From Eutreptiella sp. 'Long Island Sound 2002' (taxonomy: Eukaryota; Protista; Euglenida): a DNA stretch of 64,000 nucleotides. The stretch is from NCBI GenBank assembly GCA_964036045.1, contig OZ038378.1, positions 4,588,001 to 4,652,000 of the forward strand, given 5' to 3'. Positions 1-19,874 of the stretch are shown in pieces. A model generated the notes under the pieces. The model was not told the DNA's origin. It did not search any database and was given only the letters and a program-made list of their open reading frames with translations. Positions within the stretch are counted from its first letter, which is position 1. Every line of letters starts with the position of its first letter. The translations under genes were made by a program, and so were the position numbers.

Positions 1-1157
1 TCACCGCCGCGCAGCAAACGACGGTCACCCAGATGCACCTGCCGTGCAGGGTGACCCTGTCTGAGGATTGTGGGCTTGTGGCAGGGGAGGGGGGATTTTT
101 TGTAGCCCGTTTTGCCTACCGGCTGGGGTCCAAACACTGGTGCTTGGACCTAGCCGTGGGGTCGGAGGAGGGGGGGTTGATGGCGCGCGCTGGCTCAATT
201 GCTTTTAAGCAGGTGCTGTCATGGGACGTGCAGGGGGAGGGGTTTTTCTCGGAGGCTTGGCACGCCATGCGTGGCCACGTCTCCACCTTCCGTGCCAGCG
301 CTCTGGGGGGGGACGTCATTGACCCAGAGGTGGTCAGTGATGGGGAGGTGACGGATGGGGGGAAGAGTGATGGCGGCCGCAGTGATCGGAGTGCCCGCAG
401 TGGGACCGCAAAAGGAAAAAAACGGGCCGCCAAGGACATCAACCCCCCCGCCCCCCCCAAAAAGCTGGCGGGCAAGGGAAATGCAGCCGCACCTCAGAAG
501 GCGGCCCTGGGGAGCCCCCTTCGTGAGCCTGGGTCACCGGGCACTGTGCCCATGATCGTGTACCGGGAGGCATGCCGTGACCGTGACCAGTTTCGCCAGG
601 AGCGGGATGCTGCCCGTCTGGCAGCGGAAGCAGCCACCCGTCTCAAGGAGGAGCTGGACACGGTCAAGCGGCAGCGGGACGACCTGCAGGCGAAGCTCGT
701 GGACGCTGATCGCCAAGGGGCTGCCACTGAGGCACGCCTGGAGGTGCTGCAGCGGTCCAAGGGCTGGAAGAACATTGAATCTGGGCCGGGGGCTGCATCC
801 CCCTCCCAGTCAGGGGTTCCGGTTGCACCCCCCGCCACCTACAGCGCGCAGTCCATGCAATTCCTGGCATCGGGACTGTTGGAGTACGCCCACTTGGCCA
901 CGCGGCTGATGGCCGACGCCAAGTCGTCGTGCCAGCAGCTGCAGACCATTGCTGGGCTGGCTCGAACAACCACGATGCCGGACCTGAGCGTGGACAGCCT
1001 GCCGAAGGTTGAGGCGGAAGTGTCAACCCGCCTGCAGAACGCCGACCGCCGGTACCGGTCGGATGTGGTGGCGGCTGCTCAGCAGCCTGGCTGGGAGCCA
1101 GAGCAGTCCGCGTTCGGCAGTCCGGGTTCTCTCCCTGGAACTGCGGCTCTGTGGTAG
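1..1157 (+). CDS. Hypothetical protein with central coiled coil; probably 5'-truncated by the window edge
   Basis: 374-aa ORF from ATG 33, and the frame is also open back to position 3. GC-rich and intronless. Acidic/basic low-complexity linker followed by a helical stretch (YREACRDRDQFRQERDAARLAAEAATRLKEELDTVKRQRDDLQAKL). No family recognised. Confidence 0.5.
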   Translation, partial: TAAQQTTVTQMHLPCRVTLSEDCGLVAGEGGFFVARFAYRLGSKHWCLDLAVGSEEGGLMARAGSIAFKQVLSWDVQGEGFFSEAWHAMRGHVSTFRASALGGDVIDPEVVSDGEVTDGGKSDGGRSDRSARSGTAKGKKRAAKDINPPAPPKKLAGKGNAAAPQKAALGSPLREPGSPGTVPMIVYREACRDRDQFRQERDAARLAAEAATRLKEELDTVKRQRDDLQAKLVDADRQGAATEARLEVLQRSKGWKNIESGPGAASPSQSGVPVAPPATYSAQSMQFLASGLLEYAHLATRLMADAKSSCQQLQTIAGLARTTTMPDLSVDSLPKVEAEVSTRLQNADRRYRSDVVAAAQQPGWEPEQSAFGSPGSLPGTAALW

Positions 1158-1440
1158 CCGCTGGACCCCCACTACGTGGTTCGTATATATGTATGGTATA
1201 TATTGTTGTTGAGCACTTCATGACATTTCTTTTGGGGGGGCTGGGGCCACAGATTGCAGCGTGCTGTGCACTTGCTGCACCACTTTCTGCCCTGCTGTGT
1301 GCCTTTGTTTCACAGGTAAACGTGCCGTGATTGTGGCCGTGTACCGATTGCAACTGTATGTTATTCCAAAAATATTGACGGAGCTGAAAATTTTCCAAGG
1401 CGGCCAGGGGCCACCACTTTCAGCTCTGATGTGCTGCTTC

Positions 1441-1720
1441 TTTTCACACAGGCCAGTGGCCACAACTTTCAGCCCTGGTATGGGCACGAACAAGTGAGGG
1501 CTGTGCTGCCTTTTTTCACACAGGCCAGTGGCCACAACTTTCAGCCCTGTTGTGGGCCTGTGTTCAAGACCAGGGCCGACTCTGGCCCCTGTGGTATGTT
1601 AATTGCGACCCTTTTTTTTTTCTTTCAATTTTGCATGCAGGCCAGAGGCCACGTCTTTCAGCCCTGTTACGGGCACGAACCAGAGCAGGGGTGTGCTGCC
1701 TTTGTTCACACAGGCCACAC
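1441..1720. repeat. Degenerate ~70-bp tandem repeat
   Basis: Three copies of CAGGCCAG(T/A)GGCCAC..CTTTCAGCCCTG at about 1450, 1521 and 1638. Confidence 0.75.
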
Positions 1721-1796
1721 AGACCGCAAACAGTATTTGAAAACAGTATTGGCCTCTTGTGTGGTGCCTGTGTACTGCCTGTCTTTTGGTGTGCAG

Positions 1797-1995
1797 TGAC
1801 TGAGAGGTAACTGAGAGCTCAGTGAGAGCTAACTGAGCGCTCACTGAGCTCACTGAGCGCTCACTGAGCCATTTGGCGCGCTCAGTGAGCGCTCACTGAG
1901 CGCTCAGTGAGCGCTCACTGAGCGCGCCAAATGGCTCAGTGAGCGCTCAGTGAGCGCTCAGTGAGCGCGCCAAACGGCTCAGTGGGCTCTCAGTC
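1797..1995. repeat. Left palindromic array of 11-bp units CTCA[C/G]TGAGCG; contains a perfect 108-bp palindrome
   Basis: Base-by-base check: 1848-1955 is its own reverse complement (centre 1901/1902, first mismatch at 1847/1956). Confidence 0.95.
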
Positions 1996-2215
1996 GGGTG
2001 GATGGAATTGTTGGCCGCCACAAACAGGTGGTTGTGGGCAGGGGGTGCAAGGGGGATGTGCCACCTACCACCAGGGACTGAAAACAGGTGTGTGCCAGGG
2101 CTGGGGGGGGGGGGGGGGGGCTGCAGCGCATATTACGGCAGCAACCGGGCGGAGGGGGGCGTCAAAGGGGGCAATGCGAGACGCTGCGGGGGGTGGGGGG
2201 GGGGGGGGGGAGGAT

Positions 2216-2365
2216 GGGACAAACTCCCTGGCGGCATCCTCGGGGGGGGGTACGACGGGACAAACACGCTGGCGGCATCCCCGGGGGGGAGAGGGGGGCA
2301 AACACCATGGCGGCATCCCCCCGGGGGGGGGGGGGGGTGGGACAAACACCCTGGTGCAACCCCAC
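2216..2365. repeat. Four ~40-bp G-rich tandem units upstream of the transposase
   Basis: GGGACAAAC..TGGCGGCATCC(C)n(G)n units start at about 2216, 2257, 2295 and 2339 (the last is partial). Confidence 0.8.
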
Positions 2366-2466
2366 TACCCCAACCCGACGAAGAGTGTGAATCCTGCAGG
2401 GGCAAGGGGGGGGAAGGCTAGGGACAACAATCAAGGGGAAACAGGTGGGGGGGATAGCAAAGAGAT

Positions 2467-4290
2467 GTGAAAAGAGGTAAGTGTGACGCAAGCACGGGGA
2501 CTGCATGTGGCAATACACCTCTACCACAGGTCCTACACAAAATGCCACCCAAGCGGCCCTTTTCCTTGTTGGGAACACAGCGCCAGCGCGCAACCCGGAT
2601 TGAGCATCTGGAGGCCGCGGTGGCGGCCTCCCTATGTGAGGAATATCGGGCCGAGCTGCAACCCGATGGTAGCATACTGCTAGTCCCTGAGGACTATAGC
2701 CGGCCCACGGACACCACCCCCGACATCAAGTCGGAGGCCTTGCGCGTGCTGTGGCGGATGCGTAGTTCACAGATGTCGCGCCGCGACATGGCCTACCTGC
2801 TGCCCGACCTGGACAGCACCGTTAGCTGGGCCGACGTGGCCCCGTGGCTGAAGCACCTCAGCCAACCTGCTAGCCGGCGGGTTTGTATCCTTGAGGGGGA
2901 GTATGAGATGCAAGGGGCGTACTGCAATATTGCTGAGCGGCTAGCCCTGCTCTATGAAGCGCGTGCCGTACGCACACCGGAAGCCTTGCAACCGGGCGCG
3001 CAGCGCAACACCTGGGTGACCATCGGCGTTGACGGCACCAACCGGTGGAATCGGGCCTACGTGCACTGTGCAGTGGCTGCACCGGGTTGTGGGCCCACAC
3101 AGCTTGCTAGCTGGTGGCTGTTTGAGGGTAGCGAGATGTGGGCCACGGTGTACGGCATGCAATCGGAGTGTGACTTCGATACGCAGCTCCGCGCTGCTAC
3201 GGCCCTGCAACTGCCGCATGCGGATGGGGTGGCACGCAGCCCCCTATTCTTCGTCCGGGCCGATGGCAAGGCCCACATCATGCTGGCCGGCGGGGACGGC
3301 TTCACCAAGAAGAGCCCCGGGGCCATGGTGTGCCACTGCTGCGGGGCAAACAGTGAAACGGTTTTGCGCAAGTTCGGGGGACAAGAGGTTGCCCTGGAAG
3401 GAATCAAGGGACATGTACGGCTGACCGGGGTGTTTCGTGACATCCCGGCGGACCGCCGCATTCCTGACTTCGGTGCGCATGGAGTCATGCGTGTTGCCAT
3501 TGCGGGGGTCAATGGAATTGTGCGGGGGCTGGTGACCCATGGCGGGGTATCGAGGAAGAGTGCGGCCACCATGGTGCAGGGGGTTATAAACGGGGCACGG
3601 AAAGTGGCCCGCACGGTGCGGCCTGGAAAGTGGGGGGCGGACAAGGCAAATGCCAAAGGACAGGTGCGCATGGAGTTGGGGGCTGCTGCGCACTTTGTCA
3701 AGGCCCGGCTGTGGGGCCCACTGTTGCAGCTGGTTGCACCGGTGATGGGGAACCATCAAGTGGGGGGCAGGCCATGGGTTGATGTGTGCACGGAGTGGTG
3801 GGAGGCGTTTGCGGCCATGGCCGAGGTGGCCTGGAAGGCCGACTTTCTGAGTGGTGCAGAGCAACGTGCCTTGCTGCAACGGCAACGGACCATGGGGGCA
3901 AGGCACCTTGACCTGGGATGGGGGAAGACGTTGTGGACGCACATGTGGGTTGACCACATGTATGCGTATGTTGCACGGTGGGGGACCATTGCAAGGTTTA
4001 GTTGCTTTGCATTGGAGGGCAGCCACGTGCGACTGAAACGGTTGCTTAGGAATAGTGGGGGGGTTAGCTTGCTGAACGATAGGTCCGGCTTGCAGTGTGT
4101 GGTGGATAACCACACGCTAGATGACCACCTCCGCAAGGAAGGTTGGGAGGTGGAGAGTAGGGCCGTGACCAAGCAAAGGGGGTTCCAACGACGGTGCATG
4201 ACTTGGTCACGTGCCCGGCGGGAGAGGAAGGGGAGGGAGAACATGGTGAGGAGGATTGTGGAACGTGCATTGCGACAAAGGACCAAGTAA
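2467..4290 (+). CDS. RAG1/Transib-superfamily DDE transposase, intact, intronless (first ATG at 2542)
   Basis: 607-aa ORF. Motifs (ORF numbering): VTIGVD189G; LFEGSE; FVRAD266GK followed by C289xxC292; IPD334FGAH338 (cf. RAG1 SIDALH); H492xxxxH497, then R-W-G-T-I and E517 exactly 20 residues after the second His. RAG1 has the same layout: H937/H942, RDGSI, E962. Confidence 0.85.
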   Translation: MKRGKCDASTGTACGNTPLPQVLHKMPPKRPFSLLGTQRQRATRIEHLEAAVAASLCEEYRAELQPDGSILLVPEDYSRPTDTTPDIKSEALRVLWRMRSSQMSRRDMAYLLPDLDSTVSWADVAPWLKHLSQPASRRVCILEGEYEMQGAYCNIAERLALLYEARAVRTPEALQPGAQRNTWVTIGVDGTNRWNRAYVHCAVAAPGCGPTQLASWWLFEGSEMWATVYGMQSECDFDTQLRAATALQLPHADGVARSPLFFVRADGKAHIMLAGGDGFTKKSPGAMVCHCCGANSETVLRKFGGQEVALEGIKGHVRLTGVFRDIPADRRIPDFGAHGVMRVAIAGVNGIVRGLVTHGGVSRKSAATMVQGVINGARKVARTVRPGKWGADKANAKGQVRMELGAAAHFVKARLWGPLLQLVAPVMGNHQVGGRPWVDVCTEWWEAFAAMAEVAWKADFLSGAEQRALLQRQRTMGARHLDLGWGKTLWTHMWVDHMYAYVARWGTIARFSCFALEGSHVRLKRLLRNSGGVSLLNDRSGLQCVVDNHTLDDHLRKEGWEVESRAVTKQRGFQRRCMTWSRARRERKGRENMVRRIVERALRQRTK

Positions 4291-4326
4291 GTGCTTATGA
4301 TGGATGATTTGTGCCCGTGCATGTTA

Positions 4327-4497
4327 AGTGAGCCCTGAGTGAGCCCCCAATTAGCTCTCACTGAGCGCTCACTGAGCGCTCACTGAGCCATTTGGCGCGC
4401 TCACTGAGCGCTCAGTGAGCCCTCACTGAGCGCTCAGTGAGCCGGCTCAGTCACGGCTCAGTGACGGCTCAGTCGGGATGCTCAGTCAACTGAGCCG
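4327..4497. repeat. Right palindromic array of CTCA[C/G]TGAGCG units
   Basis: Starts about 37 nt after the stop codon. 4357-4403 is the exact reverse complement of 1919-1965 (47 bp), and 4367-4403 is an exact direct copy of 1848-1884 (37 bp). Internal perfect palindromes at 4399-4420 and 4422-4441. Confidence 0.95.
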
Positions 4498-5280
4498 TCG
4501 AAAAAAAGAAACCCCCCCGGTGAAATCCTCTTGGCCTAGGGATTGGGATCCCTTTGGGGACATTCCAAAACCCCAACCCACCCCCGAAAGCCACAACTTT
4601 TCACATTAAACCCCTTGAAAAACACCACTTAGCCCCAAATGAGCCGTTTTAGCCCCAAATGAGCCCCAACTTCACATTTCCAAGTGAGCCGCAGGTACAC
4701 ACTTGTAAGCATTGGGCATAGGATCTCTAGGTTGCAAATGTGTTGCCACATGGTCAAGCATCTTCGTCACATTTTGAACATCATCGCAAAAGACCTAGTT
4801 TTTCACGTCTAGTTAAGGCCTCAACACTGTTTGGTCCACATAGGGGTATAGAGTACCCTGCAAATTCGGGTAGCTATTGATGTCATCGATGTCTGTGGTG
4901 CAATTGATACCACACCTAGGTATGGAGTACCCTACAAATGGGGTTAGCTATCAATGTCTGCAGTGCTATTGATAAAGATATTCACCTCCTTACCAGAAAG
5001 CTCCCAACATCCATTGGATTTGATGCTCATGTTCAAAAAGCAAATGTCACGTGACGAGAAAGGCAGCATCTTTCCCCATTGGCTAGTCTATTCGCGCGAA
5101 ACGGATCTTGGCCAAATTTTTCAGCCACATCGAAAAAATGGGGTAGTTTGGACAGCCTATACCCCCTATCAAGACTTAGAATGCGCCTCCCCCCTCTCTA
5201 ACATCAACCCTTCCGAAGGAACAAGTGCAGGCATGGCCATGCATGTGGGCCAGCGCCAGCAGACGTCTGCTTGCCAAAGG

Positions 5281-5690
5281 ATAGGAATTATGGGGAAATA
5301 TGGGGAATTATGGGGAATTATGGGTTTGTATGGGGTTGTACGGGGAATAATGGGGAATGATGGGGTTGTATGGGGTTGTATGGGGTTGTATGGGGAATTA
5401 TGGGGATTCATGGGTTTGTTTGGGGAATTATGGGGAACCGTCCCTGATGCTGGATCATCCACTGTTGCAGTCCCAGATGCTGGATCATTCAGTGCTGCAA
5501 TCCCAGATGTTGGATTATCCATTGTTGCTGTCCAAGGTGCTGGATCATCCACTGTTGCAGTCCCGGATGCTAGACCATCCACTGATGCAGTCCCAGATGC
5601 TGGATTGTCCACTGTTGCTGTCCTAGATGCTGGATCATCCACTGTTGCAGTCCCAGATGCTGGATCATCCATTGTTGCCGTCCCAGATGC
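5281..5690. repeat. Compound minisatellite: (TATGGGGAAT)n-like 10-mers, then about eight 30-bp units CCAGATGCTGGATCATCCACTGTTGCAGTC
   Basis: Directly visible. Reverse-orientation pieces of both units occur at 5996-6115; 10-mer arrays also at 6543-6603 and 41885-42000. Confidence 0.9.
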
Positions 5691-6344
5691 TGTGATAGTG
5701 GGTAGTGGTACAATAGGGCAACATATGCAGCTCACACAATTTGCAGTACCACGGCCCTCGGCAGATTTGATTCTCAATCTTGCAAAATTTCGGCCCCACA
5801 CGGCCGCCGACGTTGAGCGGTGCAATAGCTTTTACAAAGTGACCCGCACGGACAAGCAACACTCCTTGAAAGATGCGCATCATTTGGGACGCTTAAGTTT
5901 CGTGATGAACGGTGTTGCTCCGGCGCCTATGGCCGTTTGACATGAGGCCATGTGAATGAATGTCTTCCCGACTTGTGTTGCACACGCATCATAAAAATTC
6001 CCCATAATTCCCCATATTTCCCCATATTTCCCCATACAACCCCATAATTCCCCATAATAACAGTGGATGATCTAGCATCTGGGACGGCAACAGTGGATGA
6101 CCCAGCAACAGCAGTACCCTTAGCGCCGCCACCTTGCGGTTGCACAGCCTCCTGAGTAGGAGTAGGCAGTGGTGCAGCAAAAGTAGCAGCCGTATCAACA
6201 CCTTGAACATCAGCAGCAGCATCAGCAGCAGCAGCAAAATCAAATGCACATGCTTCACGGTGACCATGTGGTACCACTTGTAGTGCAGCTGTGCAAGACA
6301 CCCATCCTCCACCACGACGGCCCCCAGTACAAGCGAGGCCAATC

Positions 6345-6603
6345 TCAGTACTGGTGACACACTTGATGTCCTGCTTCTTCATGACCCTAGCCAAATGACC
6401 CTGCGACAGGTACTCCCTTGGGGGTTTGTAGAGGTACAACAAACGAACTTACAAGACATTGTTGAAAGCATGAAAATTTGAATCTGACATGTCCGTGGGG
6501 AAGGAGGGCAAAAGGAACAAGAAAGACACTAGCAGCAGCAGCATAATTCCCCATATTTCCCCATATTTCCCCATATTTCTCCAAATTTCCCCATAATTCC
6601 CCA
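6345..6603. repeat. Dispersed repeat, second copy at about 41676-42000
   Basis: Both loci share ACACACTTGATGTCCTGCTTCTTCATGACCCTAGCCA..GAGCATGAAAAT.TGAATCTGACATG..AAGAAAGACAC, followed by a CCCCATAATT array. Confidence 0.85.
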
Positions 6604-6810
6604 TGGACAGAATTGGTTGCCTCAACCCTGCCTTCTCGGGGGCCCAAAAGTGGGCGGAAATGCTACATCACCCCTGCATTCACGGGGATCCCCAAACAAA
6701 GGGGGACAAAATCAGAATTGGCTGCCTAAACCCCGCCTTCCGGGGGGCCCACAAGTGGGCGGAAATGCTACGTCACCCCTGCTTTCTCGGGGATCCCCAA
6801 CAAAGGGGAC
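6603..6810. repeat. Satellite-like family (core GGCTACATAACCCCTGCCGTCTCGGGG), ~110-bp dimer
   Basis: Related copies at about 22330-22410, 44380-44610, 45120-45240, 47530-47910, 51700-52320, 56500-57085 and 58700-58790. Confidence 0.75.
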
Positions 6811-6902
6811 AAAATCAAAGCACAAAAAAAGCAAAAAAAAAAAAAAAAAAAAGCAAAAAATTTCCCATGGTGTCTGTGATCTTGCCTATAGTCCTGCAAA
6901 CT

Positions 6903-6973
6903 GCCCCCACTGGGGTTCAAACCCAGGACCATGCAGTTGCAGAAGCACTACTTTACCCACGAGGGTATGGGCC
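6903..6973 (-). pseudogene. Degenerate tRNA-like sequence (possible SINE head; Cys-like GCA)
   Basis: Minus strand reads GGCCCATACCCTCGTGG...CTGCAA...CTGGG-TTTGAAC-CCCAG. T-stem is perfect, but the acceptor and anticodon stems are broken. Confidence 0.45.
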
Positions 6974-9376
6974 ATCTCTGACACACCTCTGCACAGGGGT
7001 GGTATTCATATTTGGTCCAATTTGGTTTTCATCCATTATTGCTTTCTCCTCAAAAAAACTGAGTATTTTGAGTATAGACACATGGGTTGAAAACCCATTT
7101 TATCACCCTCGACTAGTTCAAGCAAATTTTCCTTAGAACGCCTTTGGCGCCCATGGTCCGGCACTTTCCAGCCAATTTCCCGGGAGGGGGGGGGGGGGGT
7201 CGGCGTAAAGGGTCCGGTCCCGGCGAGCCCCCCGTGCTAACATTATTATGAAGCAAAACCGCCGATGACCTCCATGGGATTGTAAAGATATTTGTGCATT
7301 TCGAGAATCTGACGATACAAACCCTCCAAGGATTGCAACCATGTAGGATTGTGAACTTCGAAAAAGCTCACCATGCATAATCTCCAAATTTTGATGCAGT
7401 GCTTTGAATGGCTTTGCTTTCAAATGGGGGCCACGTATTAACCCTCTGGCCCACCAATGTAGTGTTGTGAATTGTCAAAATGGACAACCACACATGAACT
7501 CCAAGGAATTGCAACAATGCAGTGTTGGAAAAGGTGGATCGCTCATCAATTCCAAGTGATTGCAATGCCAAAGTGCCATGAATCTTTGGAACCTAAAAAT
7601 GCTGCACATTTGGGGACTTTGGGGGGGCTTGTTGTTAGTATCTAAAGGTTTCTGGGTGCTTGGCATTAATTCTAGGAGGTTTTAGGGTGGGCAGTGTTGA
7701 CCATTGAGTATGACGCTGACCTTCTGATCTTGCAGCTCCTGCCCAATCGAATGGACGTTCGTGTATGCAGACCATGACAGCACAGTTTCTGCAATCATCC
7801 CATTCACAGCCCTGAAATGCATGCAGTGCCATGTAAACTCGGTGCGTGGGTCCATGGAACAACCCCAATACACACATCGTGCGCGCACGGTACTCCTAAC
7901 GTGGAAGAGTGGTGCAGTGAAGAACCATAGCAAAATGAATCATTGACGGTTTTCTGGCTGTCCTCAAATGGCTTCAGGAGCTTTCTCATCATTTGGACAA
8001 CTGCACATGTGTTCCTTTCGGTGCTATTGGGGGTTGAGCTACACAGGCTGCAGGTTTTGACATGTTGTGTTGTCCTTAGCGACAAACACTATCAAGGGTG
8101 CAATGTGCATTTCATCATCTTCTCCAGAATCTGAAGCAGATGATAAAATATCTGAGGCAAACCTATCAGAGAGCAGTGACTGATCGCGGGTGTACCCTGT
8201 ACAAATATAAATGCAATTTGCAGGCTTAGCTAGACTGCATCAGAGGCAGGCAGTGTGGGCAGAACCTCCAAAATACTGAGTGTGTTTCACAAAGCCGTCA
8301 ACCACATCCAGCACATTGCTCGGGGGTTGGGGGGGTCCAGCTGCCCCCGGCCCTAGTCTCTGGCATGCCGATGGCCGCCGGATGTGAAGGCAACCTCTCA
8401 CCGGAGGCTGCCGGATGTGGCCTATTCTGGTGCTGGAGCCGGGTGTGAGTGTTGTTGTGTGTTTGGGTTTTAATCGACTGTGTGGCGCTCTCCTAGGCTG
8501 TCGGAAGACAGGCCGACGGCCAAAAAAGCGCCACAACAAACTTGAAATACAGCATTTGAACCAGGGATACGCAGTTTGCAGGTCTGTGCATATACTGAGG
8601 CACTGCACTACTCTGCTCACCACTTGTGCATGGGTGGCATAGTGTCTGATGACAAATATGACTACTATTTACAAGTCTGGCTGAACCAGTGTGCAAGATG
8701 CAGGTATTGTCACGCAGTCCTTGCTCCTCTCTGGCCACATGCAACACAAGACAATGCATTGGACAGGGGTTGGTGCAGCCTAGACAGTCCAATCATATCT
8801 TCCCACATTTAGCCAAAATGGCTTGCCATTCCAAAGGGTCCATGGCTGAACTGCCTGAGCTGTCTCTACCTGTAAAGCAACCGACCCTGCTGCCCTCCCA
8901 GAAACTTCTAGTTACGCTTCTGGGAGAGTGGTGTTTGCCCTGCCGGAGTGTGCCAGATGTGGACCAAACTTCTGCCGGAGGCTGGTGGATGTAACCTCAT
9001 GTTTCTGCCGGAGGCTGCCGGAGGAGGCCAAAAATCTTGCCGGAGACGAGGGGCAGGTATGCCCCCACCCCCTCCTGCTGTGGCTGCTTGCGAACGCACA
9101 CTTCAGTGCATGGTGAAAAGAAATTGCTCCTCTGAATGTCCCACTGTGAATTTCTGGCCAGGATCAAACATAGTGAAGGATGGGGCGTGGCGCTCCCCTC
9201 CTCCTCTAGCACTCGGTCGCTCTAATGATGCCCCAACAAAAATGGACCAGGCGCGAGGCGGAGGGGGCACAGGAGTGTCAGGGAGCAGTAGCCCGCAGAC
9301 TGTAGCCACCCAGACAACGCCCCAATCATCATGGGCACAGTGCACTGCAGCCCAGTCACACTGCCCCAAGGCGCCT

Positions 9377-10432: not shown

Positions 10433-11244
10433 TCTGTGCTCTTCCTGCAGAGAATAGGATGCAGAAGTTTCCGCCCGTTGACGTTCAAATTTTAAGGGAA
10501 GGTGTGACATGCTTTGGTGGTGCATTGTTGAATAGCATGCTCTGCCCTACACCCCCCTCCCCCCATAAGCCTGCTAGGAGCCCCCTAGACCCTGGCATTA
10601 CCCTTCTTCCTGGCCGTGACAGATTTCCTAAAGGGACTTGCTAGCTTCTTGGTCGCAAGTGCACATGTGCTAGTTTGAGTAAATGTTTCACAATTGACCC
10701 AAACTGCACCCTTTGCTGATGTAATCGGGCACAATTCTCAGAGACACACACTAGGTACGCACGTGGCCCCGACATCCTGGATTCTCTGTGGGTTGGGCCT
10801 AGATTATGTGCGCTTGCAATGCGATATGCAACGCACAGAGGATGAACGGTGGTTTGAAGGCTGCCCCAAATGCAGCAAAGGCCACAGGAAACAAATGGGG
10901 CAGGGCTGGCTTCCCACTGCAAGGGAATTTCGGAATAACACCAAGGACATGGATGGTTTCCATTTTGTGCAGCTGAAACAGTGTCGCGGTCATGTCCAAT
11001 GGGCAGCCTCAACAAAGCTATGTAATTTATTGACATCCTGCTGAAGCATCTGACGGAAAGAACGTGAAACACATGCAGGGAAGCACACAGCACAGCCCTC
11101 CTCAGTTTCCCGGGAACCAGAATTGAAATTGGTGCAACTCCTGGGTCTACAAGATGCATACTTGTTCTTTTCTGGGCTACACACAAGATATGCACTTTGA
11201 AGAGTTACTTAGCAAACACACAGTCCAGTTGCAACAATACACTT

Positions 11245-11415
11245 ACACATGATGCACACATTCGGATTTTGGGGTTCACACTGTTGACACTTTTGGTATA
11301 CACATCAACCCCTATTCTGCCAGGAACACACACATGATGCACACATTTGGATTTTGGGATTCACACTGCTGACACTTTTGGTATACGCACCAACCCCAAT
11401 TCTGCCAAGAACGCG
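11245..11415. repeat. ~86-bp tandem duplication
   Basis: ACATGATGCACACATT.GGATTTTGGG.TTCACACTG.TGACACTTTTGGTATAC occurs twice in tandem. Confidence 0.85.
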
Positions 11416-14127
11416 ATGCAAAACATGTGATGGGGCCAGCCCCCATGGCCCTTGATCCTGGGAACAATCCTTCCACGGCCTGCCCTCATGGCATATCTTG
11501 CTTGAGTTCCTAATGCTCAAGGTGTCATTGAGTGTACTTCAGAGAACCCAGGAAAATAGAAGGTCCCTTTATGTACAGTACAGGTGCACCCGGGTGCACC
11601 CAGAAACTGGGCGGACCTTAGGTTTGAGCAACACACAGTCATAACATGCGTTGACCCTTCATACAGTAGTGCAGTAGTGCAGTAGTGCAGTTGGTCTGCC
11701 ATGCCCACTAGTGCAGTTGGTCTGCCATGCCCACAGGGCATCATTCATTGGTACATGTGGTGGCGCATATGCAATGCATGGAGTACAGTGTGTCAGCAAG
11801 CATCATGGGTGCACGGGCGGCTGCAGTCAAGGATATCCCTTATCCATCATACAACGGTATAGCTTCAAATGTGTCATGCATGGTGCATAGAGCACACAGC
11901 ATAGGTGACTTGAAATACCCACCAACTGGGGCACCGGGAGTGAACCCAAACCACAAAATGGGGTCCATCCCGGTAATCACATGGCCATAGGAACAACTGC
12001 GACCGTGATCCAGAGATACCTAGACGCACGAGCGACTACATTTGACACCAGCATGAAGACCTTTCGGTCATCCGCCGGTAGGGACTTAGGGTATGGCTAA
12101 CCAAGCGACGGCATGTTATCTTGTTGCTCCTTATACCAACGTGCGATGCCTAAAATGTCAGGTAGGCCCCACGCCCGGTTGAGCTGTGCCATGGCTGCGG
12201 TTTCAGCTTGTGCACCGGATCTAACCGGCAGCAATCCGAGTGTGGGGCCGACTTGCTCTCGCCACTTGTGTTGGGATCGACGGGGATCCCGCACCATACG
12301 TCCAGACGGGGGCACTTCCTCCCAAGCCGCCGCGTGCACCGAGACATCCGGGGAGTTGTTGTCTTGCCTTGTGCCATGAGGCAGGGATCCTGTGCCATGG
12401 TACTGGGACAAAGCGGGCCATGGCATGATATCCAATCCCGTGTGTGTGTATGGTGGCGGCGGGGATGGTGGCGGACCTTTGTGCCGCATTGCATCATGGG
12501 ATATGGTGTCCTTGGACACCATATCCGTGAGGACACCCACAGCATGTTGTGCAAACTGGACGTCAAGAGACATCTTATGCATGATCCTCTTGGCATCCAC
12601 CCAATGTACCTGTCTACGGGCACAACGTTCAACACTGTCCACATCAAGTGGGGGACATGCACCGCTGTGTGTGGCTCACTTTGCCCTGTGGGCCGTGAGA
12701 GCGGCCTCAAATTAGCACTCATGGCTGGCAATGCTCGGGCACTGTGTGGTTGGCTAGGCAGCATGCCTGGAGGTGGACTCATGTATGGCTGCCAATGGCT
12801 GCCCGGAGCCTGCTCACCCACATGCGGACGTGGTTGCTGACATTTCTTTGCTGCGTAACAGCATTGCGTGCCCCTGCGGCATGACGAGAGGGCTCCATGG
12901 GGGCCCTTGCAGCTTGAGTCGGCCGCCCTAGTCGTGGTTGTTGTTGCCATGACCCGCGGGTAGGATGTGAACGCATTGCTAGAGCCGCGCGGGCTCAGGC
13001 ATGCCCAGGTCTCTGCGGAGACGCTTTATTTCTTGCAGGTGCGGTCCCCTCTCCGGCGATGGGTACGCTTGGTACCATACCCGGTCGGGACCTGTTGCCC
13101 CTGCATTCCAGTGTGTGCCATCCATGGCGGCATGGGGAAGGGTACCATGACCGGCACAATACTCCATGCTGCATGCATTGTCCTAGGCGGGCTGCTTTGT
13201 CGACGTATGCGGGGAAGCATTAATGTGCCTGATCGGGACCGAGATGTCGAAGACTGTGCTTGGGACGGTGTTTGTGATCCGGAACTGGGAGGCCCACTGG
13301 AACAGTGTCTCTATTGTTGCCTTCGGACTATCTCCTTTAGGTGTGGCGGGCCTTGGTGCATCGCTGCCATCAATGGTTCCCAGGCACCTTGGGAGGCCTT
13401 AACTGCCCAGGGTGTGTCTGTATGTGCGAAACAAGGACGTTTCCTAGGTTCAAAAAAAATGCAAATCAGCACCCACAAATTGCACGCAGCGCACAACGCC
13501 TCCTTATTTCACCTGAAATCAACCCCCATTTCCCCAATTTTACCCCCTTTTCTCGAAATGTAGATGTGCAAACACAGGAAAACAGGCATGGAAAATCCGG
13601 AAAATGGCATTCAAGTGCCGATCACATTGTCCACGGAAAGGTTTTGGATGTCTGGACCAGTTCGATCTCGAAACAACGTGCCAAAGATACCTAAAATATA
13701 CCCTTTTTTTAACCAAATTCCAATGAGAAGCGAAATTTCGCCACATATGAAGAAATTATAGAATCATAGTATGAAATTCCGAGCCGCTAATGTCTGCATT
13801 CAAAATCTCTAGACACAATGGAATATTCAACTGGATGGCACATTGGGTCACAAATACAGTACATGAGATACAAACAAACACAAACCCAGTAGACAGACTG
13901 TCACATCTGCCTAATCACTGGCACTGCAGGCTGCCAACACCGCAGATCAGTGTAAACAAATTGCATTCGAATTGAGTCGGGACAAAATCAAAATGAAATT
14001 CTACTGCTCAGAGTATGAAGATGGTGACATTGCATATCACTCCCACCAATTTCTCATCACAGCAGTAGCCACCAAATCACCTGTACCTCTTATTGCCCAA
14101 TGTTTTGCCCTTCTGGGGTGCTTTGCT

Positions 14128-14841
14128 CTAAGATGTTTGTGTGGCACCACCACTAACCAGTTGCAAGAAATGCCCCAATCCTTCTGGTGTGTGCGATTGC
14201 GAGGCCTGGCTGCCACGTCCCGGACTGGTCACATTTTGACTCTCCATAGACCCTGTAGTTGGTCTGTCGGCGGGCTCTGCTGCGGATTCATCCACTGGTG
14301 ATCGGTCCCTTTTTTTGGGTGTTTTGTTGGGTGTTGACTGTGGCATAGCCGTACCACCTCCATTGGCATCTCCATCTGCATCCTTCGCCGAGCCCTTTTT
14401 CGGTGTGGCCTTCGGTTTAGCCTTGGGTTTTGGTTTCGACTTTGGGTCCACACGTGTTGACTCAAGGTCCAGATCGTCAACGTCATTAGGAACGTAGGCC
14501 ACCCCAGTCCAGTCCACAGGAAACCCCTTGTCCAACTGAGGCAGATCAAACTCCCAATAAATTGGTGCCAGAGAGTCAGCTTCCCGCAAAGAGCTAGTTG
14601 TCAACTCAATAGCATCCTTTGGCAATTCATCAATGTCAGCTTTGAGATACCCAAATGCGACTGAACATTCAAATTTAAGACGGATATGCAACTGAACGGC
14701 CAGATTTGGGGATGAGGACCCCACCAATACCCAGTTCGTCACGTTTAGCGGTAGATCCAAAATCCCCATTACCCATTGCACTGCTTTAGGACTCAGGATA
14801 CTCTGCAAAGGGCCCTCAGTGAATGTCGGGTACATAGGCAA
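14128..14841 (-). CDS. Hypothetical protein (module D of the 13.5-18.9 kb element), globular N-half plus Lys/Pro-rich tail
   Basis: 237-aa ORF with protein-like composition (WEFDLPQLDKGFPVDWTGVAYVP; KSKPKPKAKPKATPKK). Possibly truncated by a premature stop. Confidence 0.45.
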   Translation of the reverse strand: MPMYPTFTEGPLQSILSPKAVQWVMGILDLPLNVTNWVLVGSSSPNLAVQLHIRLKFECSVAFGYLKADIDELPKDAIELTTSSLREADSLAPIYWEFDLPQLDKGFPVDWTGVAYVPNDVDDLDLESTRVDPKSKPKPKAKPKATPKKGSAKDADGDANGGGTAMPQSTPNKTPKKRDRSPVDESAAEPADRPTTGSMESQNVTSPGRGSQASQSHTPEGLGHFLQLVSGGATQTS

Positions 14842-17199
14842 CTAGAAAAGGGGTGCAAATCACAAAAAATCCAAGGGAGACGCGAAATTTCGCACGATTT
14901 CGGAAACCGGAAAGATTGGCGTATGATATTCACAAGGGCTGCACAAGTGTTACCTTCCTTGGAATCGGAGCCAATGTGACATTTGAAAGCACCGACTGCA
15001 TAATGTTGAAGCTTGGACTGCGACTACCCGTGTTGTAGATCATCACATTCACCACATTCACCCCTTCCTCAGCCAGATCCGCCTGTAATTGACCGTTGAT
15101 GATCCAAACTTCAGCCAAGTCACTAGCGATTAGCAAAGGTTTTCCCAATGCAACGTGTCTCACAGCCAAAGGAGGCACCCCATTGACCAGCCCTTGGGGA
15201 GTTCAATAATTGTCAAAATGAAAGGCGGACCAACGATTGTGGCATTTTGGATTGTGGTAGGGTTCAACAGACAGATTTGAAATGGTGATTCGGCGCCCCC
15301 GGCATGTGCACCCGTGGCACCAACTGTACCGAGATGAACCACACTCCCATCAACTCCAGCAACATTAAATGAATTGCATGGTCTTGAAAGGTGACTTCTA
15401 ACATCAGCGTACTTCCAAGATGTCCAAAATTCTGCTGTACAGACACAATCCCACGGAGGCATAGGATTGTCCTCAGTGTAACTCCAGTCAGCACAGCGGA
15501 ACTTCGGTGCACCAATTCCCTTAGTGTGACGTTGCAAGGTTGCAATCTCTGAAGGGTTCTCTAAAATTGATGAACACAAGGTACTAATCAATGAAAATTG
15601 GACGAGACGCGAAATTTCGCAGCATTCGGACGAATCAGAGGATTGGGCACTCCTCTTCAATGGTATTGCAACACATACTTCGAGTTTGATGCACCACATT
15701 CTTTGGACAGTTGGGATGCATAACAACTCACGTCCAACGCATGTCTCGTTGACAATCTCGTGCTACTTTAGCCAACCTAGCAACACTGGCTCGTGGAGTC
15801 TCCGTGTATTGGGCACATTGCGCCACAAATGGTCCAACCAGTCCCTCCAGCGGCTTGAATGGGCCCAGTGACAAAGGGATCCCGCGGATCTCAAAATTCC
15901 GTATACCATCAATGGCTGAATACCCACAGGTCTCAATCATTCTTGCCACAGGTACCCACCTTCGAGCCACAGAAATCACTGCAAAAATTAGGGTCATAGT
16001 GGCAGAAGAACATTCACACACCAAACTTCCTTCATCGGTTGTTTGTCCTGCCTCCTCTAGCATCACCCGGCAAACATCTGTCATACTCAGCTCGGCATTC
16101 TCTGGCTCCTCTAGATTCTCCATCAAAAGCACTGCCCGCTCACTCAAAGAAGACCCTGTGCCTGATAATTGAGCAGTCTGCTGTCGACCAGCCAGGCGTC
16201 GTTGTACACGCAAGGGGTATCCCACTTCAATACCATACACTCGAATTCCAATTGCAACCGCAGGGGATCCTGATTCTTCTTTTCGCGTGTAGCTGCATGT
16301 AGTCGTGCTGCTGAAAACCTATGCTGTCCACCAATAATCCAAAAATTGCCCACTGAAGTAGCAGCACAAAACTATTCAATGAACGGGAAAAGCAATCGAC
16401 GAAATGAGAACTTGTACAACAGCAACATGCAATTATCTGGCCAGACCAAAAAGCCCTTGATGATGTTCGCTCGTGGGACCCTCGCCAGGTTGTCGAACCG
16501 TCTTTTGACTCGGACGTCGCTCACCTTCCTTGTTTGCCCGTACTCTCTGTTCTCATCGATCCTCGGCACCTTGTACGACACAGTCACTGTCCTTTGCACG
16601 GAGTCTGCAAGGGAGACGGTCCTGATACCCGCTTTTTTGGCAGCACGGTTGTGAGGAGTTCGTTGACTGAGTCCATCGATGGTCGGTTGGGATGGTTGCG
16701 AGAGAGAAGGGGGGTCTGGGCCCACAGAGATTCGGGTTCCTATTTTGGGGGGCGCATCCGACATTGGTCAAATAGACTGCAGGCAAAAACCACCGGTTTT
16801 GCTTCAATGAACATACGGAATACGGTGCACTCCTGGATTTCAGCCCCATGAATTCCTGATTTGAGGCCAAATTACGTAGCTTCGGTGTTTGGTAGTGGGA
16901 ATTTTGTCACAACGACCGTCGATCCTAAAACAATGCTGCATTTGCTTAATGGTTCAAAAACATTCATGAATCACACACATGTACAGACAACCATAAGGGA
17001 TGTTCTAGTACTCTCTGGCTTGGAGTGATCAATGCCTTTCTTTGACGTGCCCTAGACTTTTTTGCCTAGAATGTGTGAATGGATGTGAATTTTACTGTGA
17101 GACGCTGAATTTCGCATCATTTCTGGAGACCGCCTTTTTCGTATGGGTGAATTCATGCAGTTCCAACGTGACGCGAAATTTCGCATACTTTTTGTGATT

Positions 17200-18663
17200 T
17201 CACTTATTAGGGGGTGTCTAATCAAGATGTTTGCTAGTGGTACTTCGGAGGTCTTTGCAACTTTTCCCCCGACACAGAGAGGAAGAAAACGCCTACGGTT
17301 CTCACTAACGAACAAATGTGTGTCGAGGTATGGGTCCAACTTGAGGAAATTTATTTTCAACGTTTGTGTGGGAAACCTACCCATTGTCCAATGGCAACCC
17401 CCACCCCTTCCCGTTGTAGAAGCTGTGGCCCTTCATTCCGTTGATGCCCCTTTCCTGGTACCTTTGCGGCTGTTCCATCACGAAGCTCCCTATTTGCTGT
17501 TTTTCACAAATATGTTCGAACTCTCCTTTGGAGGAACCCACCAAGCAATGATCTTCTGCAATTACTACAACAAACAGTGCCACCATCTCCAATCGAGCAG
17601 CAGCGCAATGCTGCGATTCAACGAGTCTTGGAAATCACCCGCCAAGCAAAACCGAAACCTAAACCCAAGCTGAAGCCAAATAGGGTTCCGCACCCTGTTC
17701 CAAACTCCATAAATGAGGGGTAGACTCGCCAAGTGCAAATGGAAGTTCCATGGTGTAAAGCTCTGCCCATATAGATACTGGCTTCATATCCACACACAAT
17801 GGCAAATCATGTCGAGTTGTCTGCTGCAGGTAACGGATCATGTTCAGCGGTTTCAAATGATCTATTTTGGTCCCACACCGCAGCTGAGAGAGCATCATTG
17901 GTTGCCACCGAAGGGAGAGGACGTTCTGACGTACAATGACCAAAGGTACTCTAACAAATGTCCACCGAATGATACCCAGTAAGGCATAAACACGCCGAAA
18001 GAGATCTCCATGACATGCCTGCAAAGCTTTCACTTGTGCTCCAAAGGTTTCAACGGCATCCATCAACGAAACATGACCCAGAAATGGTGGTAACACCGGT
18101 AGATGCAACACAACAACAGCCGTGCAATTATGGGAATGATCGGGATGCAGCAGATCAAGCCCAAAGTTTTTTTTTTCACCCATTTGTCATACCAAAGGCA
18201 CATCTGGTGGTTATGCATGCTTTCCCAAAGCCATGTAGCCTGCTGGCGTGCTCTGGTTATTAGTGTCGGCATTGGCTGCGTGCATAATTCTTGTTGGAGC
18301 CAACAATCGGCGTGCCCTCCGGCTCAAAGGGATTGCCACCGGTGAATCTTGAGACTGAGTCTGAGGAGCAGCAATTTTTCGTTGTAGTCTGCAAAGGCAG
18401 ATCAATTGATTTGAGAAAATAGTGTACCAACGGGGCTTCTTGCGGACACCATAAGGAAATAGCAGTTGCGTAAGATCCTTCCGAGTTTGTCTAATAGTCC
18501 GCATGGCCAGTGCCCAGACAGCAAGTAACCTAGCAGATCCACCATTCGCAACATCTGTCATCAACCGCTCTACGGTTTGAAACTCACGTCCAGCAACAAC
18601 CACACCTAACAATGCACGATCCATCGCCCGTGTGCAGCTCACAGCAATGAATCGGATTAACAT
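17200..18663 (-). pseudogene. Fragmented ORF, possibly a DDE transposase relic
   Basis: Stitched across frames: CLWYDKWVKK..SHNCTAVVVL, LPLCVDMK and LPLIYGVW. The layout is reminiscent of D..D..GxxH transposases. Several stops and frameshifts; family not established. Confidence 0.3.
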
Positions 18664-19874
18664 GCCTCAGATCAATGAACAAACTGGGTAATAAAGATGT
18701 CAGGACTCAGGGGAAAAAAAACATCATAGGCTTCAAATTGGTTCCAATACAATACAAACACACAGCAAAGATGACCATTGAAAGGAAAGGCATCAAATCC
18801 AATCCAAAGTTGAAGAAGTGGCGAAATTTCGCGTCTCGTTGGACTTGAAAGTGGTTAACAATGGGTATGATATCACATATTTTCAAATGACATGCGAAAT
18901 TTCGCATCATAATTGAAATTGGCTAATTTGGGGTGTTGATTTAGGTTGTTGAGAAAGCTTCAAGTGTATGAGAACAAAAATTGTCGTTTCAAACCCAGTC
19001 TTCGGCAATGTCTTACCTCATCCTCTAATTAGTACCCCAAAAATTAACCCCGGTATGAGGCAAAATTTTGCACTTGTGGGCGTCCGGGAGGGTGGGCAGT
19101 GAGGGCCTCCCAAGGGTACTGCTAAGATGCGAAACGGCCGCTTTGGACAAATTACACCTACACCTATGGCCCGGCCCTGCAAAGCCTACCCCTCTGACCT
19201 ACCCCATGTAGAAATGTACAAGGGTGTTGGCACACAGTGGGGGTACAACGCATGCACAACACCGAAACCAACCGCACCACATAGGGGGCCTAGCTACTGC
19301 CACATGACTCCACATGGCTTTACACAAACTCCCATTGTCACCAAATGATGACCCCACAATGGCACCCGAGATGTGCCATGATTGTTGGCAACATGTGAGC
19401 TGGATCACCTCATGGAAAAGTTGTTTAAGGAGCCGCGGGAAAGTATAGTGCATCAAGTTGCTCTAAGATGTGCATTTTCACCTTTTAGGCCTTGCATGTG
19501 GTGTTTCGAGTGGATGTTGGTTTGTCGCTCACGCCAATGCTTGATCTAACATCTCTCTTCGAGGTGATTAACAGGGATTACATGCTGAAACAAGGCCCTA
19601 TTTGCACGCGATAGGCAGGTATTTCCCGCCAAGGGTGAATATGGGATAATCCATGTAAGCTTGTGTGTACATGGGGATAACCCGAAATTTCGATGTCAGC
19701 CACTAGCTCCCCTTCCTTTATTTTAGACCTTCCAAGCACAAGCATTCCACAACCCCAAGCCACTTAGCCCACGCAAACTGCACCCTGTTTTTCACCTCAA
19801 GGGTGGCATTTGTGTGCAAAAAAAAGACGCGCGGTTTCCGCGTGTTTCCACCTGAAAACTGAGAATTAAAAAAC

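Follow-up and report, generated by a model that had tools for sequence, protein, structure and literature searches.

What marks the ends of a transposon whose transposase gene appears to be bracketed by arrays of short palindromes instead of terminal inverted repeats (TIRs)? The question is posed by a 64,000-nucleotide stretch of the genome of the euglenid Eutreptiella sp. 'Long Island Sound 2002' (GenBank assembly GCA_964036045.1, contig OZ038378.1, positions 4,588,001 to 4,652,000; hereafter the window, with positions counted from its first letter), in which an intact, intronless gene for a 582-residue transposase with a predicted RAG1/Transib fold (2542–4290, plus strand) has tandem 11-bp units on either side. 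The first-pass annotation regarded these units as taking the place of normal TIRs, found no target site duplication (TSD), and likened the units to the heptamer of the recombination signal sequence (RSS). Comparison of genomic copies gives another answer: the gene belongs to an 8.1-kb element with conventional TIRs and a 2-bp TSD, and its arrays are most likely phased binding sites for a dimeric protein encoded by the element itself, either the transposase or an accessory product.

Conventional ends around an 8.1-kb element

The transposase open reading frame (ORF) is present in multiple copies in one eukaryotic long-read assembly, the best matches being 88–98% identical and lying on contigs of 0.3–4 Mb. 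One of these copies, L001, aligns over its positions 3491–8158 with window 1–4699 at 97.4% identity. The homology between copies ends exactly at window 4699, 200 bp past the right array, and leftwards it reaches the first base of the window. In L001 the whole element occupies 52–8158, with boundaries identical in the copies L002, L003 and L004. By this alignment and these shared boundaries, window 1–4699 (plus strand) is the right 4.7 kb (4,699 bp) of a three-gene DNA transposon, of which the remaining 3.4 kb on the left (TIR, array 1, gene 1 and array 2) precede the window.

Both ends carry the same 17-bp TIR, TGTACCTGCGGCTCACT, with termini TGTACC...GGTACA in all copies compared. The left TIR starts at L001:52; the right one (window 4683–4699, up to L001:8158) ends in GTACA and closes a right terminal region (4478–4699) that contains extra GCTCA/TGAGC half-sites. 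When the copies were aligned, the dinucleotides beside the two ends agreed in all four (TC, AG, TG and CA), as expected of a 2-bp TSD. The insertion site of L001 is informative in this respect, as it lies within a 41-bp tandem repeat: removal of one TC from the reconstructed empty site yields a gapless 57-bp match to the neighbouring intact repeat unit, whereas joining the flanks with both TCs left in produces a 2-bp gap against it. The element has conventional TIRs and a 2-bp TSD, which had escaped notice since its left end precedes the window and the right TIR falls beyond the interval first considered (1797–4497).

In the light of this comparison it is scarcely credible that the arrays are recombination ends, be they RSS-like signals or hairpin footprints, of a single-gene cassette devoid of TIRs, even though the RAG1 fold, the CACTG/CAGTG inside the unit and the position of the arrays on both flanks of the transposase gene speak for it. 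Homology does not stop at either array but continues as far as fixed TIRs, flanked by 2-bp TSDs; the two arrays are two of four clusters internal to the element; and the tip of the element is TGTAC, not CAC, with the heptamer-like letters away from the cleavage border. The heptamer CACAGTG itself does not occur in 1797–4497, and its reverse complement CACTGTG is found there once. Footprints left by the opening of hairpins, and the palindromic P-nucleotides that would go with them, were rejected as an origin of the arrays, which are internal, fixed in position in every copy and conserved between subfamilies. Nor did the idea that the gene is excised or inverted as a cassette find support, as no copy shows either event: gene order and orientation are the same in all five copies, and the number of array units alone differs.

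Individual copies have undergone other changes near their right ends. In L002, a single block made up of the final 507 bp of the element and ~1.19 kb of its right flank is flipped (11714–13399), with the AG target duplication remaining on the terminus and the breakpoints outside the arrays. The 3' end of L003 is interrupted by a 5.4-kb insertion (11109–16479) with several minus-strand ORFs of 169–531 amino acids, and a Helitron-like gene pair (Helitron_like_N and PIF1) is located just past the right end of the element in this copy. Additional copies of the TIR, a sign of non-autonomous derivatives, were absent from the 190 kb searched. The summed contig depth of runs X1 and X6 over window 4481–4800 is 7–10 times that of the ORF across the terminal 220 bp, which hints at many non-autonomous derivatives or at related families with common ends.

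Four arrays of a phased palindromic unit

The repeated unit, GCTCA-[G/C]-TGAGC (consensus CGCTCA[C/G]TGAGCG), is a 5+1+5 palindrome whose orientation is shown by the centre base alone. Units of this 11-bp type, first described as CTCA[C/G]TGAGCG, were confirmed in both flanks of the transposase gene by TRF, a repeat finder and a pattern count. The first two place the arrays at 1799–1968 (running on to ~1998) and 4327–4474, and a two-unit pattern matches 26 times in the window, always within 1817–1966 or 4356–4442, against an expectation of 0.00 from shuffles.

Each element possesses four such arrays, the window holding the third and the fourth. Arrays 1 (L001:254–397) and 4 (window 4322–4477; L001:7784–7936) are subterminal and mutually inverted. 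Array 4 begins 35 bp past the stop codon of the transposase gene, and the array 1 region (L001:224–397) matches the array 4 region of the window (4518–4335, in reverse) at 88% identity. Arrays 2 (L001:2709–2906) and 3 (window 1797–1998; L001:5282–5464) lie between genes. Array 3, in the interval between gene 2 and the transposase gene (L001:6001–7749), contains ~11 exact CTCA[C/G]TGAG cores at spacings of 11 or 21 bp, together with three copies of TTTGGCGC (one on the plus strand, two on the minus strand). The phasing is strict: in L001, 11 bp accounts for 18 of the 30 spacings, most others being 21 or 32 bp, the arrays of the window show spacings of 11, 21/22 and 32 bp, and distances of 21, 32 and 43 bp correspond to the replacement of a unit by a spacer motif. 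No array unit is closer than 220 bp to the element terminus. Clusters of at least three cores are confined to the four element positions in the ~190 kb inspected, and a reading of the arrays as an unrelated satellite was rejected.

Two further observations of the first-pass annotation are exact: window 4357–4403 is the reverse complement of 1919–1965 (47 bp), and 4367–4403 is identical to 1848–1884 (a 37-bp direct repeat). The matching in both orientations is thus real, but it does not have the significance once attached to it, since the unit is itself palindromic and any two such arrays will trivially match both as direct and as inverted repeats. In the more diverged copy L004 (82–86% identical) the two subterminal arrays (3860–3960 and 11390–11430) have in common a variant unit that is not a palindrome: the left array contains three tandem copies of CTCACTTAGCT and the right array three of the complement, which suggests a concerted change at both ends within a subfamily.

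A perfect 108-bp palindrome within array 3 (1848–1955), also recorded at first reading, is confirmed in the window sequence and is specific to this copy. It is missing from the matching array of L001, L002 and L003, where the longest perfect palindrome measures 10–30 bp, and the number of units between the spacer motifs (CCATTTGGCGCGC and its complement) is four in the window copy, two in L001, three in L002 and two in L003. The palindrome is known from the assembly sequence, as the short-read contigs of all four runs stop inside the arrays. Folding of 1790–2000 as single-stranded DNA gives −109 kcal/mol (z = −18), so that the palindrome would be predicted to make a very stable hairpin. To judge from the copies, it is a copy-specific outcome of unit turnover in a quasi-palindromic array and not a designed feature.

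Could the arrays as a whole be the product of such turnover, expanding like microsatellites and carried along by the element without any function? Copies that are 94–97% identical do differ in unit number and in centre bases, pointing to fast slippage or conversion. However, we regard this explanation as very improbable, because position, period and core have outlasted a divergence that should have erased them. Transposase identity to the main family is 65% in the subfamily L010 and 62% in the subfamily L011, with a dS of 1.9–3.4 (saturated) and a ratio of nonsynonymous to synonymous substitution (dN/dS) of 0.11–0.14, which indicates purifying selection on the transposase gene. At a dS above 1.9 unconstrained non-coding DNA is expected to be randomised, yet L010 has four arrays with an 11-bp period at positions matching those of the main family, at least two are present in the examined sequence of L011, and the arrays of both keep a TCA[C/G]TGA / CA[C/G]TG core. 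The terminal 250 bp of L010 can still be aligned to the main family; the flanks of this old copy show no TSD.

Analogous arrays recur even in relatives from other samples at 29–31% identity, again counter to the microsatellite explanation. Upstream of the transposase gene, L008 has arrays of a GCGCGC type and L013 arrays of TTAGCG(YR)CGCTAA, a palindrome whose centre is asymmetric, as in the array unit of the window element (the contigs of the distant relatives are 2–2.5 kb long and end beside the transposase gene). Palindromes private to each lineage are what a co-evolving, element-encoded dimeric binding protein would be expected to leave. A second, unrelated-looking element in the window (13730–18905) contains six exact copies of a 12-bp palindrome, GCGAAATTTCGC, over ~5 kb, where 0.07 are expected.

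The array unit is also connected with the terminal repeat. Its octamer GCTCACTG coincides with positions 11–18 of the TIR, and further GCTCA half-sites follow at 11-bp spacing within the terminal 100 bp. In the main family the TIR contains GGCTCACTG and 35 of 39 units read GCTCAC, with C at the corresponding position. The inner TIR motif of L010 and L011 is GGTTCAC or GGTTCG, and their array units have T at that position in 5 cases out of 10 (L010) and 7 out of 12 (L011). The TIR motif and the array unit therefore change in parallel, which favours a protein that reads the TIR, i.e., the transposase. Among the three explanations offered when the arrays were first noticed, that of phased binding arrays fares best in its general form, as sites for a protein, with the 11-bp period, the conserved core and the recurrence of the unit in the TIR all in its favour.

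A RAG1-like fold in a PlavakaA-like element

The initial description of the transposase as a RAG1/Transib protein is upheld by its fold and motifs and not by its sequence family. Searches of the PDB with the transposase, both single-sequence and profile-based, returned no RAG1, no Transib and nothing else meaningful, and the outcome with Pfam, given below, was similar. By contrast, an AlphaFold model based on an alignment of 17 relatives (predicted local distance difference test score, pLDDT, 83.8; predicted template modelling score, pTM, 0.79) retrieved, in a Foldseek search of the PDB, 48 best matches that were all RAG1, amphioxus RAG1-like (BbRAGL) or HzTransib. Structural re-alignment, spanning ~400–430 residues, gave Z scores of 22.1 for RAG1 (model residues 60–544 against RAG1 460–1007), 20.1 for HzTransib and 18.1 for BbRAGL, the next fold being the P-element transposase at 12.3. 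On this model, the likeness is one of fold and motifs.

The 17 aligned relatives (28–65% identity) conserve the motifs DGT, ADGK, VCxxCG, PDxGLHG, LWxHLWIDHM and EGSH, from which we derive candidate catalytic residues (D164, D241 and E492) and candidate zinc ligands (C264, C267, H467 and H472). An exhaustive profile search recovered 475 relatives, mainly fragments, and a metagenome scan for more added two contigs only, of ~2.3 kb. The likeness to RAG1 and Transib extends from the DDBD to the CTD (Z 18–22) and includes the CxxC and Hx4H zinc ligands: the second aspartate and the glutamate are separated by 251 residues in the element (D241–E492) and by 254 in RAG1 (D708–E962), and the second histidine precedes the glutamate by 20 residues in both proteins. 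The ends are, however, unlike those of Transib, ProtoRAG and RAG1, with a TSD of 2 bp instead of 5 bp and termini in TGT instead of CAC. None of the features that define a Transib (5-bp TSD, CAC termini and sequence similarity) is present, and in contrast to the RAG1–RSS system the element lacks both a heptamer–spacer–nonamer layout with 12/23-bp spacers and a RAG2-like partner.

The CACTA/EnSpm-Mirage-Chapaev-Transib (CMCT) clade, whose members generate TSDs of 2–5 bp and have C(2)C and H(3–4)H motifs in common (Kojima 2025, PMC12730594), offers a more natural home. Its motif set, here D164, D241, C264-x2-C267, H467-x4-H472 and E492, is conserved in the 17-relative alignment. As the PDB contains no EnSpm-type structure for comparison, a RAG1 fold would be expected for any member of this clade. 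Within it, PlavakaA transposons have 2-bp TSDs and 5'-TGT..ACA-3' termini, and the Plavaka lineage is associated with dioxygenase cargo, TET/JBP being found only in PlavakaB (PMC12730594). The element agrees with PlavakaA in its 2-bp TSDs and its TGT..ACA termini; its candidate oxygenase cargo looks PhyH-like and not like the TET/JBP of PlavakaB. It differs in a transposase that matches no Pfam transposase model and in a host that is a protist, from estuarine samples, and not a fungus. By its ends and motifs we provisionally place it in the CMCT clade as a PlavakaA-like element whose transposase is highly diverged.

Subterminal repeated sites are familiar from another transposon of the same clade. 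In maize En/Spm (CACTA), each end has, over a few hundred bp, many copies of a ~12-bp motif in either orientation, to which TnpA binds; through this platform the ends are paired and the promoter of the element is regulated as well. The present element resembles En/Spm in having such sites and differs from it in several ways: En/Spm has CACTA termini, 3-bp TSDs and a non-palindromic motif and lacks internal arrays, and no homologue of TnpA was identified in the element.

The element is intact and probably expressed. The transposase ORF and the flank 3' to it are covered, at low depth, by contigs from an estuarine metatranscriptome, with none over 1–480 and 1121–1760, and one such contig lies over 563–836, within gene 2. 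This coverage suggests that the transposase gene is transcribed.

Candidate binders of the arrays

Which protein, then, would occupy the arrays? We give about an even chance to the reading in which the array sites are bound by the transposase of a CMCT-clade element closest to PlavakaA by its ends. A dimeric, element-encoded protein would bind the sites cooperatively along one face of the DNA, as the spacing between them is close to a whole number of helical turns. The transposase would be the most likely binder, given the octamer GCTCACTG that its TIR shares with the unit and that changes in parallel with it in two subfamilies. Subterminal arrays 1 and 4 could then have the part played by the subterminal repeats of En/Spm, namely the loading and pairing of the ends, while the internal arrays and the E2F-like TTTGGCGC might couple occupancy to the expression of the three genes.

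Several points weigh against this reading. The co-variation of TIR and unit comes from a small sample: it concerns one nucleotide position in L010 and L011, both of them old and decayed, and L010 retains C there in its right TIR. Internal arrays are atypical of the sites at which transposases bind their ends, and a DNA-binding domain specific for the array site was identified in none of the three element proteins. Pfam, including its transposase models and RAG1, gave no match for 17 family members at E ≤ 1, and the Plavaka assignment accordingly relies on end features and motifs and not on sequence homology. Finally, the published proposal for the closest analogue, a giant Plavaka of red algae, credits the arrays to an accessory protein (bioRxiv 10.1101/2025.02.11.637652).

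In that analogue, from Bostrychia, elements of 17–19 kb carry the accessory genes PAG1–3. PAG3, which combines a ParB-like domain, assigned with HHpred, with a 2-oxoglutarate (2OG) oxygenase, lies beside tandem inverted-repeat arrays and has been proposed to bind and modify the element's own DNA (bioRxiv 10.1101/2025.02.11.637652). The element described here shares with it a DDE transposase and internal inverted-repeat arrays that adjoin an accessory gene, which here is a candidate 2OG-oxygenase gene (a sub-threshold match). It is unlike the algal transposon in its length of 8.1 kb and in having no methylase/SET gene (PAG2); no ParB-like domain was detected by the Pfam and atlas searches described below. 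Its arrays, moreover, lie to both sides of every gene and include subterminal ones, and neither the 11-bp phasing nor the identity of the unit with part of the TIR has been described for the Bostrychia Plavaka.

As has been proposed for PAG3, an accessory protein, here either the oxygenase of gene 1 or a coiled-coil dimer from gene 2, might bind the palindromes and, acting in cis, modify the DNA or chromatin of its own element, which would thereby escape silencing. Reasoning by analogy with PAG3 and its adjacent arrays, we hold this to be possible but doubtful. Gene 1 (669 amino acids; L001:489–2498) is flanked by arrays 1 and 2 (L001:254–397 and 2709–2906), and its product is a probable 2OG-Fe(II) oxygenase. 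It matches 2OG-FeII_Oxy_3 below threshold (E 0.024–0.059; 15–16 bits against a Pfam cut-off of 27), has PhyH-like language-model features (score 0.78) and keeps an H-x-D motif and a distal H among copies. That arrays bracket every gene, beyond the ends, and that each relative, like the second element of the window with its 12-bp motif, has its own palindrome would also agree with an accessory binder. Against it, a ParB-like or other DNA-binding domain was detected in neither gene 1 nor gene 2, the oxygenase match falls under the Pfam cut-off, and the structure model of the gene 1 product, built from seven close homologues, has a pLDDT of 29 and no usable fold. An accessory protein alone would, in addition, leave the reuse of the unit inside the TIR unexplained. 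Residues 1–304 of gene 1 have no Pfam match at E ≤ 10, the ParB-like domain included; an atlas search with residues 1–320 reached scores of only 0.64; a profile search of the PDB with gene 1 found nothing; and the homologue search returned only copies from the same genome at at least 85% identity. Gene 2 (33–1157, plus strand; 374 amino acids in the window, 406 from a GTG start in L001, where it occupies 3424–4644) encodes a coiled-coil protein, with coiled-coil matches alone in Pfam, all sub-threshold, and a weak atlas match to plant Transposase_28 clusters (0.87).

A host factor would be a third kind of binder. The motif TTTGGCGC fits the E2F consensus, TTTSSCGC, and is found in every array in one or both orientations. 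Its hits fall inside arrays in eight of eight cases in L001 (345, 2760–2840, 5364–5444 and 7850), in five of five in the diverged L004 and in four of seven in the window (1872–1974 and 4391–4398). It also lies upstream of the transposase gene in relatives with other palindromes (L008 179–205, L009 53–60 and L013 353–423). Being constant while the palindromes differ, TTTGGCGC may be a site for a host factor, as far as its sequence tells. It is a larger step, and in our view an unlikely one, to regard the arrays in their entirety as promoter, enhancer or terminator modules that have no direct role in transposition, TTTGGCGC being occupied by, for example, a host factor of E2F type and the palindromes by a dimeric one, to control the expression of the three genes. 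All arrays are intergenic and arrays 1 and 3 lie upstream of genes, as this would have it, but such modules predict neither a different palindrome in each lineage nor mirror-image arrays 1 and 4 beside TIRs that share the octamer.

Upstream of the transposase start codon, ~3.7 copies of a 41-bp G-rich repeat (2203–2354, plus strand) contain ACACCCTGGCGGCA-like and ACAAACACCCTGGCGGCA-like motifs. Another sample has a transposase gene of 39% identity that is preceded by two occurrences of ACACCCTGGTGGCA (L005 1–40; L007 1–10). The G-rich repeat may be a conserved promoter, leader or 5' untranslated region element. Between gene 2 and array 3 (region 1430–1720), segments of ~90 bp are repeated (~1441–1528 and ~1629–1717), and they are present again at L001:4933–5210. 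A search of the window against Rfam gave no match.

One could imagine, speculatively and with rather low probability, a protist lineage of RAG1-fold transposons with private palindromes in helically phased arrays that surround each gene and occupy both ends, in which a single dimeric, element-encoded protein assembles the transposition complex and recruits the element's own oxygenase to erase silencing marks in cis. If true, this would be a self-addressed anti-silencing system tied to end recognition, in which the arrays would be a multi-site counterpart of the nonamer/NBD interaction of RAG1.

The comparison of copies corrects a tempting reading of this locus, which is occupied by an ordinary transposon with TIRs and TSDs, from the clade in which RAG1 originated. 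The transposon is a clean, intact example of a design close to that reported, only in 2025, from red algae and fungi, oxygenase cargo together with inverted-repeat arrays of its own in a cut-and-paste element, and to this design it adds strict 11-bp phasing, reuse of the array unit in the TIR and a conserved E2F-like motif in every array. The binder, once identified, would show whether the arrays are a means of self-recognition for transposition, of self-regulation or of escape from silencing, and the family would extend the range of RAG1-fold transposases to a lineage that is invisible to current sequence models.

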